Assembly (NCBI RefSeq): GCF_032062105.1
Contig: NW_026923186.1
Location: 1-64,000, forward strand
Direction: 5' to 3'
Source: Saccostrea cucullata
Lineage: Eukaryota
DNA length: 64,000 bases
The notes under the pieces were generated by a model. It was not told the origin of the DNA and searched no databases. It was given only the letters and a program-made list of their open reading frames with translations. Position numbers and translations under genes: made by a program. Shown here piece after piece: positions 42,757 to 55,643 of this stretch. Within the stretch, counting starts at the first letter, position 1. Each line of letters starts with the position of its first letter.

Positions 42757-44239
42757 CTATTTGTCCCGAAGAGTAGTATTTTGATACAGATGTCTTGCAC
42801 CCTTCTTGTTCTTATTCTGCTCTGTTTTTACTTTTTCTGCTGTTTTAAGATGCAGATGAGAATAATGGCTTTGTGTATCAGTGCTCTGTAATTCACATCT
42901 CAAATAACTGCTTTGTAGCTTAAAGTTCTGTTCTTTAGGACTATTCTTTGTTTTAACTTCATGATCTCGAGTAGTGACAGAAGCTTTAATGCGATTCCCC
43001 ATCTTTGTTGCCTTGAAATAATTTTTTCTGCTACAAAAGATTGTTGAATTTCAAAAAGGCAGTAGATAATGATTTGTTGAACACACCTTATGCCGCATAT
43101 AAAGAAATTTTAAAGTCACGTGTGTTCAGTGTATGCTCGAGAAAACAACAAACCTTTTGTAGAAGTATAGTAGCATTGAAAATAACAGAAAAGTACCAAA
43201 TATTGCTAAAGTTATAATCCAAGGAACTTTCTCGATGAGAGTGTCATGAAACTCTGTAAAAAAGGAAAGATTACTAAAGTAAAAAAGTACTAAAGATAAC
43301 AAAATAAGATACATACATTTATAGATAAACATAAATCAGCAACCGGGGTCTACAATTCAAATATCCTAAAGCGTAGAAAATTTCTACCATCTAAAGGTTA
43401 AAATTTAATAAAAGAATGATTTTAGCAGTTTTCCATTTTAATTTATTTTTGCCTTTTAATCAGATAACATTAATTGTGATGAGCAAAATCGGTTGTCTAA
43501 TTAGTATTGTTTAAAATAATATTGAATTTGTTTTAAATTGAACAATTGATTATATCCTTGATAAATGAAAAGATTTAAAACCCTTTTAAGTGTACTCACG
43601 TTTAGTCTTATTACTAGAAATATGTATCAATTCTATTTCCATACAAAGGACATAGTCGATTGGAATGGTATTACAGGAAGACATAGGTGGAATTATACCA
43701 GAACTCTGAGATGCACACGACATCTTGCCATCGGAATCTGCAAATATTTAAATTTGATTTTAATAAAATACTGTATAAACGGCATTTTATTGAAACATAC
43801 AGTCTTCCGCACAGAAGATTGCTCAGAAAAAAAATCTATTTTTCTAAGATAAAAATAAGACTTATTCAAGTGTATTTGAAAGCTTGCCTTTTATCCAAAA
43901 CACAGTTTTCGGCGGTTTGTTCAAAAACACACTGTTATTCCATGGAAATGATTCTGTGACAGTGGCTATGACCAGGGTAGAAGAATTCGAAGTAAAATTA
44001 CTTTCTGCATCTTTTTCTTGGATTGGACTTTGTGATGTTCCACGAAAGACAAAGGTATGTTTTGGGGAATTTAAATCTTAAACACACAAATAAATAGAAG
44101 CAGAATGCTACAGTCTAAATGAAAAACTTTACTGTAAGCGCTTTCAGCAAATGTTCGCTCTTCAAATATATAGATGTATTTATAACTTACCTACTATATG
44201 AAAATGAAGAAAGAAAACAATAAAGTTCAATCCAGGCAT
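42757..44239 (-). CDS. Type I membrane receptor A with compact C-type-lectin-like ectodomain and Tyr-motif tail (249 aa)
   Basis: Exons 44191-44239, 43888-44076, 43600-43737, 43154-43253 and 42757-43030 join in frame, with intron 2 using the GC donor gcaagc. Hydrophobic N-terminus, TM segment VPWIITLAIFGTFLLFSMLLYFY, tail motifs SHYSHL and LYQN. Confidence 0.8.
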
Positions 44240-45059
44240 GATTGCGCCTTTGGATTTCGCAGTTTTTTATGTTTTTTTTTTACTCTAATGACTACATATT
44301 TATTATACTGATTTAACATGTATTTTATTTATTTAACAGGAAGTTGGGGGCAATTCCATTCTTTTAATTCAATCAACCGTCTTGTATTAACTTCCTTTTA
44401 ATAAAGTAAATATGATTATCTCATAAATATGCATTTATTTAGTGTTCTCCCCAATACATGAACAAGAAAACAACATGTCATTTTTTTTAAAACTGTGAAG
44501 AGCAACAGATAAAACTTTTTATAGTAAGGGTACTTAACACAAACAAAAAAATTTATGCATGGATTGATATTTATTTTTTGACTAAATTTTGATTTGAAAT
44601 GACATAGATAATAAATCCTTGAGATATAAAGAAATCGTAGGTTTTCCTTGGTGTTTAGATATGAGACTTTTTTTTTGCTTCCTATTTAATTCCATACAAA
44701 ATCTTGCACAAGTTTTTAAAACCTTATGACAAAATCTTGTAAAAATTTCCTGCTATACTTGGTTAACATTATTCAGGTTACCAATTTAAATGTAAATCTA
44801 TTGGAAATATTGCTGATTTCTGAAAAAAGTTTGTGTTATTTATCCTTCAATATCAAAATAGTAAACTCAATAATGTTTTATAAATCTGCGAATGGTATAG
44901 CTTGCTAGATATACCGGTATATTAAACGGCATTTATCTTGGACAGACGCAATAAATCAAAGACAAATTTTTCATGTTTTTTTTCTGTATTTGGCGCTTTT
45001 GGGCACGGCTGAATAATATAACAACATACTATTTCGGGCCTCCAAAGCATCGGGTAGGC

Positions 45060-52000: not shown

Positions 52001-55000
52001 GACACCAAAATATTCAGCAGAAAACAGAGCTCCTCTAACAAACATCTGACAAAATAGGATTGAAGATGAATACCAAAAAGACACAAGTTTTACGAGTAAA
52101 CGCCACTAACAGTAATCCAGTACTAATCAACGGCAAGCCACTAGAGGATATTGAGGAGTTCACATACAGGGGTAGCAAGGTCACCACAACGGGCGACTGC
52201 AACAAAGAAGTCGACACCAGAATTAGCAAAGCAAATCAGGCATTTGAAATGTTGAAACCCATATGGAGATCCTCATTACTCAACATCAACACCAAGATCA
52301 GGATCTTCAACAGCAATGTCCTCAGTGTCCTCTTGTATTGATCAGAGTGCTGGAAAACATCCCTAGGGATTGAAAGATAACTAGAAGTCTTCCAAACCAG
52401 GTCCCTCGGACGCATCCTCAAGATCTTCTGGCCTAACACCATAACATAAAGATCTACTGGTAAGAACTGGGATGCCTACAATATCAGACCATCCAAATAA
52501 GACGCTGAGGATGGCTTGGTCATGTCCTGCGCATGCCTCCCAACTCACTGCCCAGGGTTGCCCTTAGATGGACACCCCAGGGAAAAAGAAGCAGGGGCCG
52601 GCCAAAGGAGACATGGAGAAGAACTGTCCTGAAAGACCTGAAGACCAGAGGTCTATCCATGGAGACAGCACCACGAGCAGCTGCAGACTGAGCCAGGAGG
52701 AAATACCTTGTAGCCACCTCAAGCACCTGATGGCGCAGAGAGGATTGATTGAGTGAATGAGTGAAAAGAAATAATGAATACATCTTGAAAGAAATCAAAT
52801 TTTCTAGCCTGCTAAATGTATATCTGCATACAGTGTTATATGAAAAAGGTGAAGATTGTGATTGATTAACATGGAATCGAAATCAGAAAATCAGAAACAA
52901 CAACAGGGAACAGGGCATAAAGCACGATCCTGAGGAGATTCAGAGGTGGGATCAGGAGCCTACGAGGAGTAAGCATCCCCTGATGATCAGTCAGACCCGC
53001 TCTGTGTATAGATCAGGAGGACGGTATATTCCGTAGTCAATTTTGGTACAAAAACAATGATTAACAATTAGTATGAAACACGTCAGCCAAAATCCCACAA
53101 AGATAGGTTACAATTATTAGCAAGATTATTATTAGTAGAGGTAAACTCCATATGATTGTAATATCGGAATATAACTACATATACTTGTAATAAAAAGAAA
53201 GTTGACGATGAAAATGCTGAATATCCATCTCGTTTGTCATTTTGTAAGTTGGTCCTTGTTGTTTATAACTAGTAAAATCACCCAATATTAAACAGATGTG
53301 AATATATTTGCTAGTAATTAATGTATCTTATTTCAAGTAACTAATGTTAGTTGTAAAAAGGCATCTATGAATAAATAAATAAATAAATGAAGGTACAGCC
53401 TACTCATGTACATGTTGATGTTTTTAATAAATTTTTGCTTCTTGGAAATATAAACGCAATGAAATACACTGTATATGGAGATAACGAACAATATTCAAGC
53501 TCAAAAGTCCACAAAACAATACAACATATGAGCAGAGCATACATGGACCTCCAAAACATCAGAGGTGGGAGCAAGTCAGCTTTTGATGCTGGAACACAAT
53601 TAGAGCCCAACAACATCAGTAAGAAACTTAAGATCTTTAAATATCAAGTTTAAATTACTTTTGTGCGGAATCCAATCGAAGTGATTTTTAACAAATAAAT
53701 TTTACTGATGACTAGTCAAGATAAGACAATGTCTGAGCTCCATTTTTTATTGAAGAAACAGTTGTCCATGATATCAAATAGCATAGTTTTAAATTTGTCG
53801 TGATAAATGGTTGAGCAGAAGAGTGAAATGTTTTGATGATAATGACATTAAAGAAATCTGATGATTTAAAGTTTCCTTAAAGTTTTGGAGATTTTTTTGG
53901 AATTCACATCTTACGAGTATTTACACCACTTATAAAATATGCTGCAGTACAGTACATCTGAAGTTTTTACTCAACAGCAGTTAATGTTTTAGTAAGGAAA
54001 TAAGATAAGAGCTTTGTAGAGCATTTATTTAACCCTGTAAAACATCTTTTTTGTAAGGATTTCAAGTTGAAGTTTAGAAAACCGGTATAAGTAGGGTACC
54101 ACTTTGGATGAGATGAATGTTAAACATTTGAAACACTGAAAGTGATTTTGAAAAATATCATCCTTGTACGAGTATAAGATTTCGAAACATAGAATTAAAA
54201 CCAAACTTTATAATAAGAAGCATGATAAACAAAAACGATATATTGTTGCATGCCCATTAAATATTGTCCATGTAGTGTCTCATATTCTATTGTCAGATAA
54301 GCCGTTACTATTTTTGCAAGGAGTAGGGATGAGAGCTTTTGCTAGACCCGATGTTGTGAAGCAAAACGTTTCCCCGTCGTGAGACTTTCTGGAATTCATG
54401 CTCTAGAGTGAGCATTTCCTCTGTGGAGAAACGGTGAAAGTCTCACTGTAGAACATGACTTCCGAGGGAAGTCTCATTATGGGGGTCTCACTCTACGACA
54501 CCAGAAATACTGGTGTATTTTTGTTTGTAGGGATTTTCATGAAGTTTAGGAATCCAGTAAAACAAAGGTAGCTCGAACTTACCTTGATTGACTGGAATAT
54601 TTAAAGTTTGAAATGAAACTGAAATTTGATCTTCAAGAGTGGTTTGCATAAGTTTGATTTCAGAAGTATACAGCTGAACAATTAAAAATAATAAAAGTCG
54701 AAAGAATACTGTTTGTAAAATACAGACACGATATTGTCACAATGTTCGTATGTAGTCTTTCTAAATGAAATTAGAAGTGATCTGAAGTCCTAGGTATTTA
54801 TTTTTATTTATATTTGTCAATCAATTTTCAATTAGAAAAAGCTAGCATAGAGGATACTTTTATTCGAGTTTCCCGGAATATGGATTTTCTGAAAATATAT
54901 TTGAGATTTGATAATTTAACTTTCATAATGATTAATCAAAGTATAATGATGAAATTCAATGAAAATCCATGGAAAAACTACACATTAATTTGAGATTTCA

Positions 55001-55643
55001 GAGACATTCAATCACTCAACCCCTGATTTTCAGAACATAGGGGTCGGGCTACCTGAACAGATTTGCCACCTGACGGAAGTGTCATTGCCTTCTTTAGCTT
55101 AAATTTCTATCATGAAGTGGATATAGGAGAGCATCAAAATACATAATTATGTGAGAAATTTCTAGTTTAATTCATACATAATAAAAGTAGTTTTTAAGGA
55201 GTATCGCCAGACGACGAATTCAGATCACTTTGTTACGCACAATTGTATATTTAAGGGTCTCATATTTAATAGTTCATTCTATCTGCTTAGTTTAAATACA
55301 GTTTCATGAATGCAAAGAAAATGGCAACGTTTAACTTTTCATTAATACAACGGTGGTCGATTATCCATGACAATTTGTAGCTTTCATAATTGCGTCTAAT
55401 CAAATTGCCCGTATATTTCGCATCAACGCATGTGATTTTACATGTTTTACGAGTAAAATAATGACAATATATTAATTTCTCCAAAAAATAAATTAAATAT
55501 ACATGTATATATTTTATACAATATTATAGAGAATAAAAATTATAAAGAAAAACTTAATTCCAGTCTTCAGAGATGCTTGCTGACTTACCAGCTGTACAGA
55601 AAGTGAATGAAACAACGATAAAGATGGTCCTTGGTTGCATCAT
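49006..55643 (-). CDS. Receptor paralog C (255 aa, or 267 aa with the microexon)
   Basis: Exons 55589-55643 (MMQPRTIFIVVSFTFCTA, similar to the B leader), optional 54583-54618, 50221-50409, 49941-50072, 49430-49523 and 49006-49303. GC donor after FWIK. TM segment VPVIVMFIIIPLAVLLAILVLTYI. Seven Tyr in the tail. Confidence 0.78.
50660..52761 (+). mobile_element. 5'-truncated RTE-clade LINE, decayed, inside an intron of receptor C
   Basis: RT motifs PKKGDLGDCNNWRGITLL, GVKQ and LEDLDYADDL. (gatt/gagt) tail. 10-bp TSD tgaaaagaaa at 50650-50659 and 52762-52771. Confidence 0.92.

Follow-up and report, generated by a model that had tools for sequence, protein, structure and literature searches.

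The locus studied here raises the question of what kind of receptor is encoded by three neighboring minus-strand paralogs in the Saccostrea cuccullata genome, and why the extracellular parts of these genes have stayed alike while their tails have not. The genes occupy 42757-55643 of the first 64,000 nucleotides of contig NW_026923186.1, the whole of which is called the window below. A first-pass annotation, made from the letters alone, had described them as a rapidly duplicating, lineage-specific family of small immune receptors with a compact domain of C-type-lectin-like kind (CTLD) and tails of the immunoreceptor tyrosine-based inhibition motif (ITIM) type. In this study, the ectodomain exons were shown to be homogenized between two old gene types, which is a signature of gene conversion. 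The best explanation overall, to which we give an even chance, is that these genes encode loop-less CTLD-like receptors that share ligand recognition and differ in tail signaling.

Results

Organization of the receptor cluster

The exon models were taken from three minus-strand copies (C, B and A) found by self-comparison of the window. Every copy has five exons, namely a hydrophobic leader exon, two ectodomain exons, a transmembrane (TM) exon and a tail exon, with intron phases 1,1,1,2 in common between C and A and the same boundaries in B. The encoded layout is a leader, an ectodomain of about 110 residues, one hydrophobic helix and a Tyr-containing tail of 90-98 residues. Gene C (55643 to 49006, 255 residues) has an open, intact reading frame and all four ectodomain Cys (residues 46, 89, 103 and 113). 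The frame of gene A (44239 to 42757, 244 residues) is also open, and its helix-1 Cys (Cys1) is replaced by Phe, leaving the four-Cys pattern to C among the three window genes. Gene B (48512 to 47163) has lost 7 nt near 48227, so that its exon 2 measures 182 instead of 189 nt, the frame shifts and stops come in; it does not encode a receptor protein. The first-pass description is thus right in outline, as regards the shared phases and the domain layout, and fully valid, including its CTLD Cys pattern, for one gene of three (C). The frameshift of B, the lost Cys of A and the conversion tract described below had escaped it.

When exons 2, 3 and 5 were searched against the assembly, as single sequences and as profiles, the same five genomic copies came up: the three in the window, and C' and A' on contig C10143. 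Window 40.7-57.7 kb and this contig align collinearly (68-90% identity); the contig has no B and may represent either a divergent second haplotype or a duplicate, and a third contig, C15577, overlaps with the 3' flank too. A' has AT at its exon-1 donor, which is lost, and in C' intron 2 contains an inverted-repeat element of 4 kb and the exon-3 donor has moved. The genes make up a small tandem cluster with two old types, C and A/B, not a large expansion, and with five copies genome-wide "rapidly duplicating" was an overstatement. The cluster appears to be in birth-and-death turnover, with B dead, A predicted to lack the Cys1-Cys4 bond and A' without a donor. No relative outside this genome was found in the databases searched, consistent with the lineage specificity claimed at first, and no S. 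echinata orthologue surfaced although proteins of that species were in the collection, a search that unannotated or longer relatives would escape. No described family was matched either, in line with the earlier statement, and the trio seems to be undescribed as far as the searches here reach.

A gene-conversion signature between the two types

When types C and A are compared, their ectodomain exons have a protein identity of 68-73% and a synonymous divergence (dS) of 0.18-0.29, whereas the tails have an identity of 25-31% and a dS of 1.36-1.62, near saturation. Nucleotide identity follows the same division, with 77-85% in exons 2-3 and 66-71% in intron 2, against 47-64%, near the shuffle level, in intron 1 (3' end), introns 3 and 4 and the 3' flank. 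Where a residue is identical, different codons are used much more rarely in the ectodomain than in the tails (Fisher p 0.0015 to 2e-7), so protein-level selection alone is no explanation. The sites that distinguish the types are concentrated at the start of exon 2 (its first 26 nt) and beyond Cys4, which indicates that the tract covers just the folded domain, from beta1 to Cys4 (Table 1). The inter-type branch is about 0.03 in the tract vs. 0.80 in the TM plus tail, and gene B pairs with C in the tract tree (support 0.80) and with A in the TM-plus-tail tree. The ratio of nonsynonymous to synonymous divergence (dN/dS) is 0.17-0.30 for the A-A' TM, A-B TM and A-B tail comparisons, indicating purifying selection on the A/B-type exons.

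Fold of the ectodomain

Each exon was compared with 21 CTLDs from the same genome. In a local comparison with the CTLD profile, helix 1, Cys1 and the following strand of exon 2 fell in register, with a score reached by one of 150 shuffles. All six full-length oyster CTLDs conform to the ordered motif A-x3-C-x6-8-L[AV]...aromatic-W-hydrophobic, and so does exon 2 of C and C', at a shuffle frequency of 1-2e-5 (1-2 in 100,000) that is optimistic, the motif having been composed after the query was seen; exon 2 is its sole match among the 650 open frames of the window. The Cys1-then-strand register at helix 1 is matched by C and C', while A' has a 2-residue deletion there. An AlphaFold model of exon 2 alone gave strand-helix-strand-short helix-strand at a mean confidence (predicted local distance difference test, pLDDT) of 63, which is the order of the CTLD N-terminal half, and fold searches with it returned no clear match, a half-domain query being uninformative. 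The Cys2-Cys3 spacing in exon 3 is 14 (canonical 13-17), and its loose three-Cys pattern arises in 2.3% of shuffles. Intron 2 lies just after the WIG-like strand; introns that follow the WIGL motif have been described in CTLDs (PMC514892).

Seven residues were counted between the WIK strand and the following Cys, as first noted, and the distance from Trp to Cys2 is 10 residues vs. 33-42 in oyster CTLDs, which bears out the missing long loop; intron 2 is too short for a hidden loop exon. Exon by exon, Pfam gave no match to Lectin_C (PF00059), and the long loop with EPN/QPD and WND is absent. Xlink (PF00193) had no match in the exon scans, and a genome search for Link modules was blank, as was its control. 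The motif and register of exon 2 and the short distance from Trp to Cys2 make it likely that the ectodomain is a compact CTLD without the Ca2+/sugar-binding long loop, in which case the loop would have been lost independently in a mollusc.

Without the long loop, canonical Ca2+ binding is excluded and glycan binding is still permitted, because Dectin-1 binds beta-glucan without a Ca2+ site (PMC7618208). Compact Link-type CTLDs are hyaluronan binders (PMC9630629, PMC11351607), and the earlier suggestion of binding to protein rather than sugar is not supported. The oyster ectodomain would bind a surface ligand of either class in a Ca2+-independent manner.

Transmembrane helix and tyrosine tails

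The C' model has one confident membrane helix (pLDDT above 90) and a disordered tail, and a type I receptor architecture is supported. No Lys, Arg or Asp occurs within any membrane helix of the five copies. A strict ITIM, [SIVL]xYxx[IVL], is present in A and in the broken B and is missing from C, C' and A', where the -2 residue of YxxL is Gly (C and C') or Asn (A'); the "ITIM-type tails" of the first-pass annotation therefore apply to A and B and not to the other three copies. YxN is present in A, A', B and C. No motif of the immunoreceptor tyrosine-based activation (ITAM) or switch (ITSM) type was found in the tails, which share one conserved YxxL, a hemITAM-like feature. When the tails of the three window genes are shuffled, single motif matches turn up in 9-38% of cases (ITIM 9-19%). 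Better evidence is the pair of Tyr, in YxxL and YQxT, that is invariant in all five tails although these are only about 30% identical. Judging from this pair, signaling through SH2 proteins is fairly probable. Oyster lectin receptors signaling via a single-Tyr motif and Syk have been described (PMC12842671, PMC13027682), hence such machinery exists in oysters.

Splicing and annotation

The exon 2-3 join requires a GC donor. Intron 2 starts with GC in all five copies, in the usual GC-AG consensus context, and neither the 40 nt upstream nor the intron itself offers a GT donor from which an open phase-1 join could be made. A tail-profile search of the protein database, which includes proteins of this genome, gave only two matches, both uncharacterized singletons: XP_062601688.1 (121 residues, TM and tail of C) and XP_062614406.1 (182 residues, C' from exon 3 onward). 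The joins in these RefSeq models, exon 4-5 in C and exon 3-4-5 in C', have the same phases as ours.

Table 1. Receptor exons, conversion tract and elements within the cluster (window positions)
Feature	Position	Strand	Remark
Gene C exon 1: start codon, 18-residue signal-peptide-like leader, GT donor, phase 1	55589..55643	-	exon model; homologous C' exon has same donor
Gene C exon 2: beta1, helix 1 with Cys1 (codon 50327-50329), SLV strand, short helix, FWIK strand, GC donor at end	50221..50409	-	
Gene C exon 3: Cys2, Cys3, Cys4 (spacing 14 and 10), Ser/Thr stalk	49941..50072	-	
Gene C exon 4: single uncharged TM helix, basic stop-transfer	49430..49523	-	exon model; XP_062601688.1 begins here; C' model helix pLDDT above 90
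Gene C exon 5: 98-residue disordered tail, 7 Tyr, YxxL without ITIM -2 residue, YxN, distal YQxT	49006..49303	-	
Gene B exon 1: leader	48467..48512	-	exon model
Gene B exon 2: frameshift by 7-nt deletion near 48227, GC donor	48159..48340	-	exon model
Gene B exon 3: three Cys retained	47900..48022	-	exon model
Gene B exon 4: TM	47560..47659	-	exon model
Gene B exon 5: tail with SxYxxL and YxN	47163..47436	-	exon model
Gene A exon 1: short leader	44191..44239	-	exon model
Gene A exon 2: Phe for Cys1 (codon 43994-43996), GC donor	43888..44076	-	exon model
Gene A exon 3: three Cys, weak GT donor	43615..43737	-	exon model
Gene A exon 4: TM, uncharged	43154..43253	-	exon model
Gene A exon 5: 90-residue tail with ITIM-consensus SxYxxL and YxN	42757..43030	-	exon model
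Homogenized (gene-conversion) tract in C, beta1 through intron 2 to just past Cys4	49958..50383	-	counterparts 43623-44050 in A, 47908-48314 in B
Degraded non-LTR (long terminal repeat) retrotransposon inside intron 1 of C, approximate limits	50646..52760	+	DUF6451, E 1.2e-16; absent at this place in C'
Inverted-repeat element like a miniature inverted-repeat transposable element (MITE), between A and B, outside genes	45828 to about 46377-46483	.	66-nt arms, 97%

Neighboring genes and mobile elements

On the plus strand of the window, two tandem gene copies (9084-11856 and 18674-21219, exons 86-93% identical) combine a PAN domain exon (PF00024, E 1.5e-4) with divergent C-type-lectin-like exons downstream, which Pfam does not recognize. 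At about 39900-41850, also on the plus strand and convergent with gene A, lie exons of a GH16 beta-1,3-glucanase or glucan-binding-like gene, recognized by weak PDB matches to laminarinases (E 0.014), with its 3' part in the block common to C10143 and C15577. Intronless secreted C-type lectins (RefSeq nattectin-like) were found at L044:466-1044 and L046:1264-1854; most CTLD matches in the genome are intron-split.

The 4-kb insertion in C' intron 2 (G000:C10143:12755-16802; in L002, L007, L008 and L011) ends in perfect terminal inverted repeats of 20 nt, has long arrays of subterminal palindromes and contains pieces of the MITE-like element found between A and B. The collinear block ends at G000:C10143:24454-33343, an element between 342-nt direct repeats (98% identical) that is probably an LTR retroelement. 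The window also holds a fragmented LTR-retrotransposon pol region (reverse transcriptase, RNase H and integrase; 26561-30013, minus strand), an inverted repeat with 189-nt arms at 97% (32916-33378), probably a young MITE, and a repeat between A and B (46480-46872) that recurs 7 kb off at 39332-39845 with 85-88% identity.

Discussion

Linked genes, homogenized ectodomains and divergent tails, the marks of a paired-receptor system, were all found at this locus, and conversion-homogenized receptor pairs have been described in vertebrates (PMC13358205). In the explanation proposed here, conversion has copied the ectodomain exons between the types, both of which should recognize the same or similar ligands, and the types would signal through different tails, hence with different output. 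Ligand clustering would lead to phosphorylation of the two conserved tail tyrosines, which would recruit SH2 proteins; the ITIM-consensus motif of the A/B tail would engage a phosphatase and dampen the response, and the C tail, with its bare hemITAM-like YxxL and extra tyrosines, would possibly engage Syk. That C and A/B signal with opposite signs is a guess and improbable, because a short-tailed partner with a charged helix is absent and the A/B side is damaged in the assembly. Equally speculative is a bivalve paired-receptor system independent of vertebrates, in which an activating hemITAM-like C and an ITIM-bearing A/B share, by conversion, an independently derived loop-less CTLD-like domain. 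Searches of the open-access literature turned up neither an ITIM/SHP receptor from a bivalve nor an invertebrate pair homogenized by gene conversion. If this reading is true, the locus would offer a small example, open to testing, of paired-receptor logic reached by convergence and of a compact CTLD that is neither vertebrate nor bacterial.

Several results weigh against parts of this explanation, beginning with the fold. The aromatic-Trp-Ile of the WIGL motif is in place in beta2 and the Gly of WIG has become Lys, the Cys3-Cys4 spacing of 10 is off by two from the canonical 8 and the strict pattern fails, exon 3 scores at background against the CTLD profile and not above shuffles, a global comparison of exon 2 with that profile was not significant (47 of 200 shuffles), and Pfam, PDB sequences, the ESM Atlas and fold libraries gave no significant match; the hindsight in the ordered motif counts on the same side. 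All this would be expected if the ectodomain were another small disulfide-bonded alpha/beta fold with a coincidental CTLD likeness, an alternative that we hold to be unlikely in view of the exact register of the motif (at 1e-5), the fitting secondary-structure order, the canonical Cys2-Cys3 spacing and the intron position. Unfavorable as well is that both RefSeq models are 5'-truncated, starting downstream of the GC intron 2 and not including exons 1-2, and that exon 2 was found in no database protein. Along with the 4-kb insertion inside intron 2 of C', this could mean that the GC donor is unused, the true products being the shorter RefSeq forms (a membrane anchor plus Tyr tail, adaptor-like) and exons 1-2 being relics. 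Such a scenario is very improbable, as the GC-AG context and donor are retained in all five copies and the frame, phase and donors of exons 1-2 are maintained in four, and GC introns are frequently missed by gene finders. The locus would exemplify a receptor class truncated by annotation at a GC intron and missed by domain libraries, and bivalve receptor counts may be too low.

With the full-length loop-less receptors taken as the products, it can still be questioned whether a pair is maintained. An activating partner with a short tail and a charged TM residue was not found among the five copies, which are all long-tailed; C and C' also differ less in the ectodomain than in the tail, though the contrast is weaker (p 0.007), as ongoing exchange or locally different rates could produce; and the between-type ectodomain dN/dS of 0.6-0.9 fits relaxed constraint as well. 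The main rival, doubtful in our judgment yet ahead of the others, is one functional receptor (C) with decaying duplicates, the ectodomain conversion being a neutral by-product of tandem arrangement. The frameshift in B, the missing Cys1 and weak exon-3 donor of A, the lost donor of A', the restriction of RefSeq annotation to C-type copies and the ectodomain dN/dS near 1 all suit it, whereas the purifying selection on A/B-type TM and tail exons, the coincidence of the tract with the folded domain and the persistence of the A type until the introns had lost all similarity tell against it. An immune role is itself an even matter. The same architecture might serve adhesion, gamete or larval recognition, or mantle or shell cells, since Tyr motifs of this sort are generic SH2 sites and CTLDs have many non-immune roles; we regard this as somewhat unlikely, because fast turnover, a divergent second haplotype or duplicate, conversion, and neighbors such as the PAN plus lectin-like genes and the GH16-like gene are typical of recognition loci, though none of these is specific.

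Comparison with known systems

In Link modules the second Cys precedes the strand Trp, whereas in the oyster domain it stands 10 residues after it. Compact CTLDs have been described before, as a class made up of Link modules and bacterial domains (PMC9630629). Link/proteoglycan tandem repeat modules (CD44, LYVE-1 and TSG-6) and bacterial CTLDs have, as is likely for the oyster domain, a CTLD core without the long loop, and four Cys (PMC9630629), and CD44 and LYVE-1 are alike in their single-pass receptor layout. They differ in that Xlink is not matched here and Link domains are described as vertebrate-only (PMC9630629).

CgCLec-HTM and CgCLec-TM1 (PMC12842671, PMC13027682) combine an oyster CTLD, a TM segment and a single-Tyr motif tail, a layout that the trio probably resembles, with CgCLec-HTM having a C-terminal TM segment too and signaling through Syk-ERK. 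In contrast to the trio, whose loop-less ectodomain misses Lectin_C, they have recognizable carbohydrate-recognition domains; no sequence link to them is shown, and no converted partner with an ITIM-type tail is described for CgCLec. The vertebrate pairs Siglec-5/14, Siglec-11/16 and PILRalpha/beta (PMC13358205) resemble the oyster genes in linkage, converted ectodomains, divergent tails and the frequent loss of one partner, and differ in that both oyster types have long Tyr tails and uncharged helices, with no DAP12-type partner and no homology. The Biomphalaria PTC1/GRC, PTC2 and LG5R clusters (PMC13712769, PMC10875847) differ from the oyster trio in carrying FN3, Ig, EGF, fucolectin or canonical C-type lectin domains and in having a resistance link by mapping. 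Like the trio, they are clusters of single-pass receptors in a mollusc, vary in copy number and have divergent haplotypes, and such clusters underlie parasite resistance in Biomphalaria (PMC13712769, PMC10875847).

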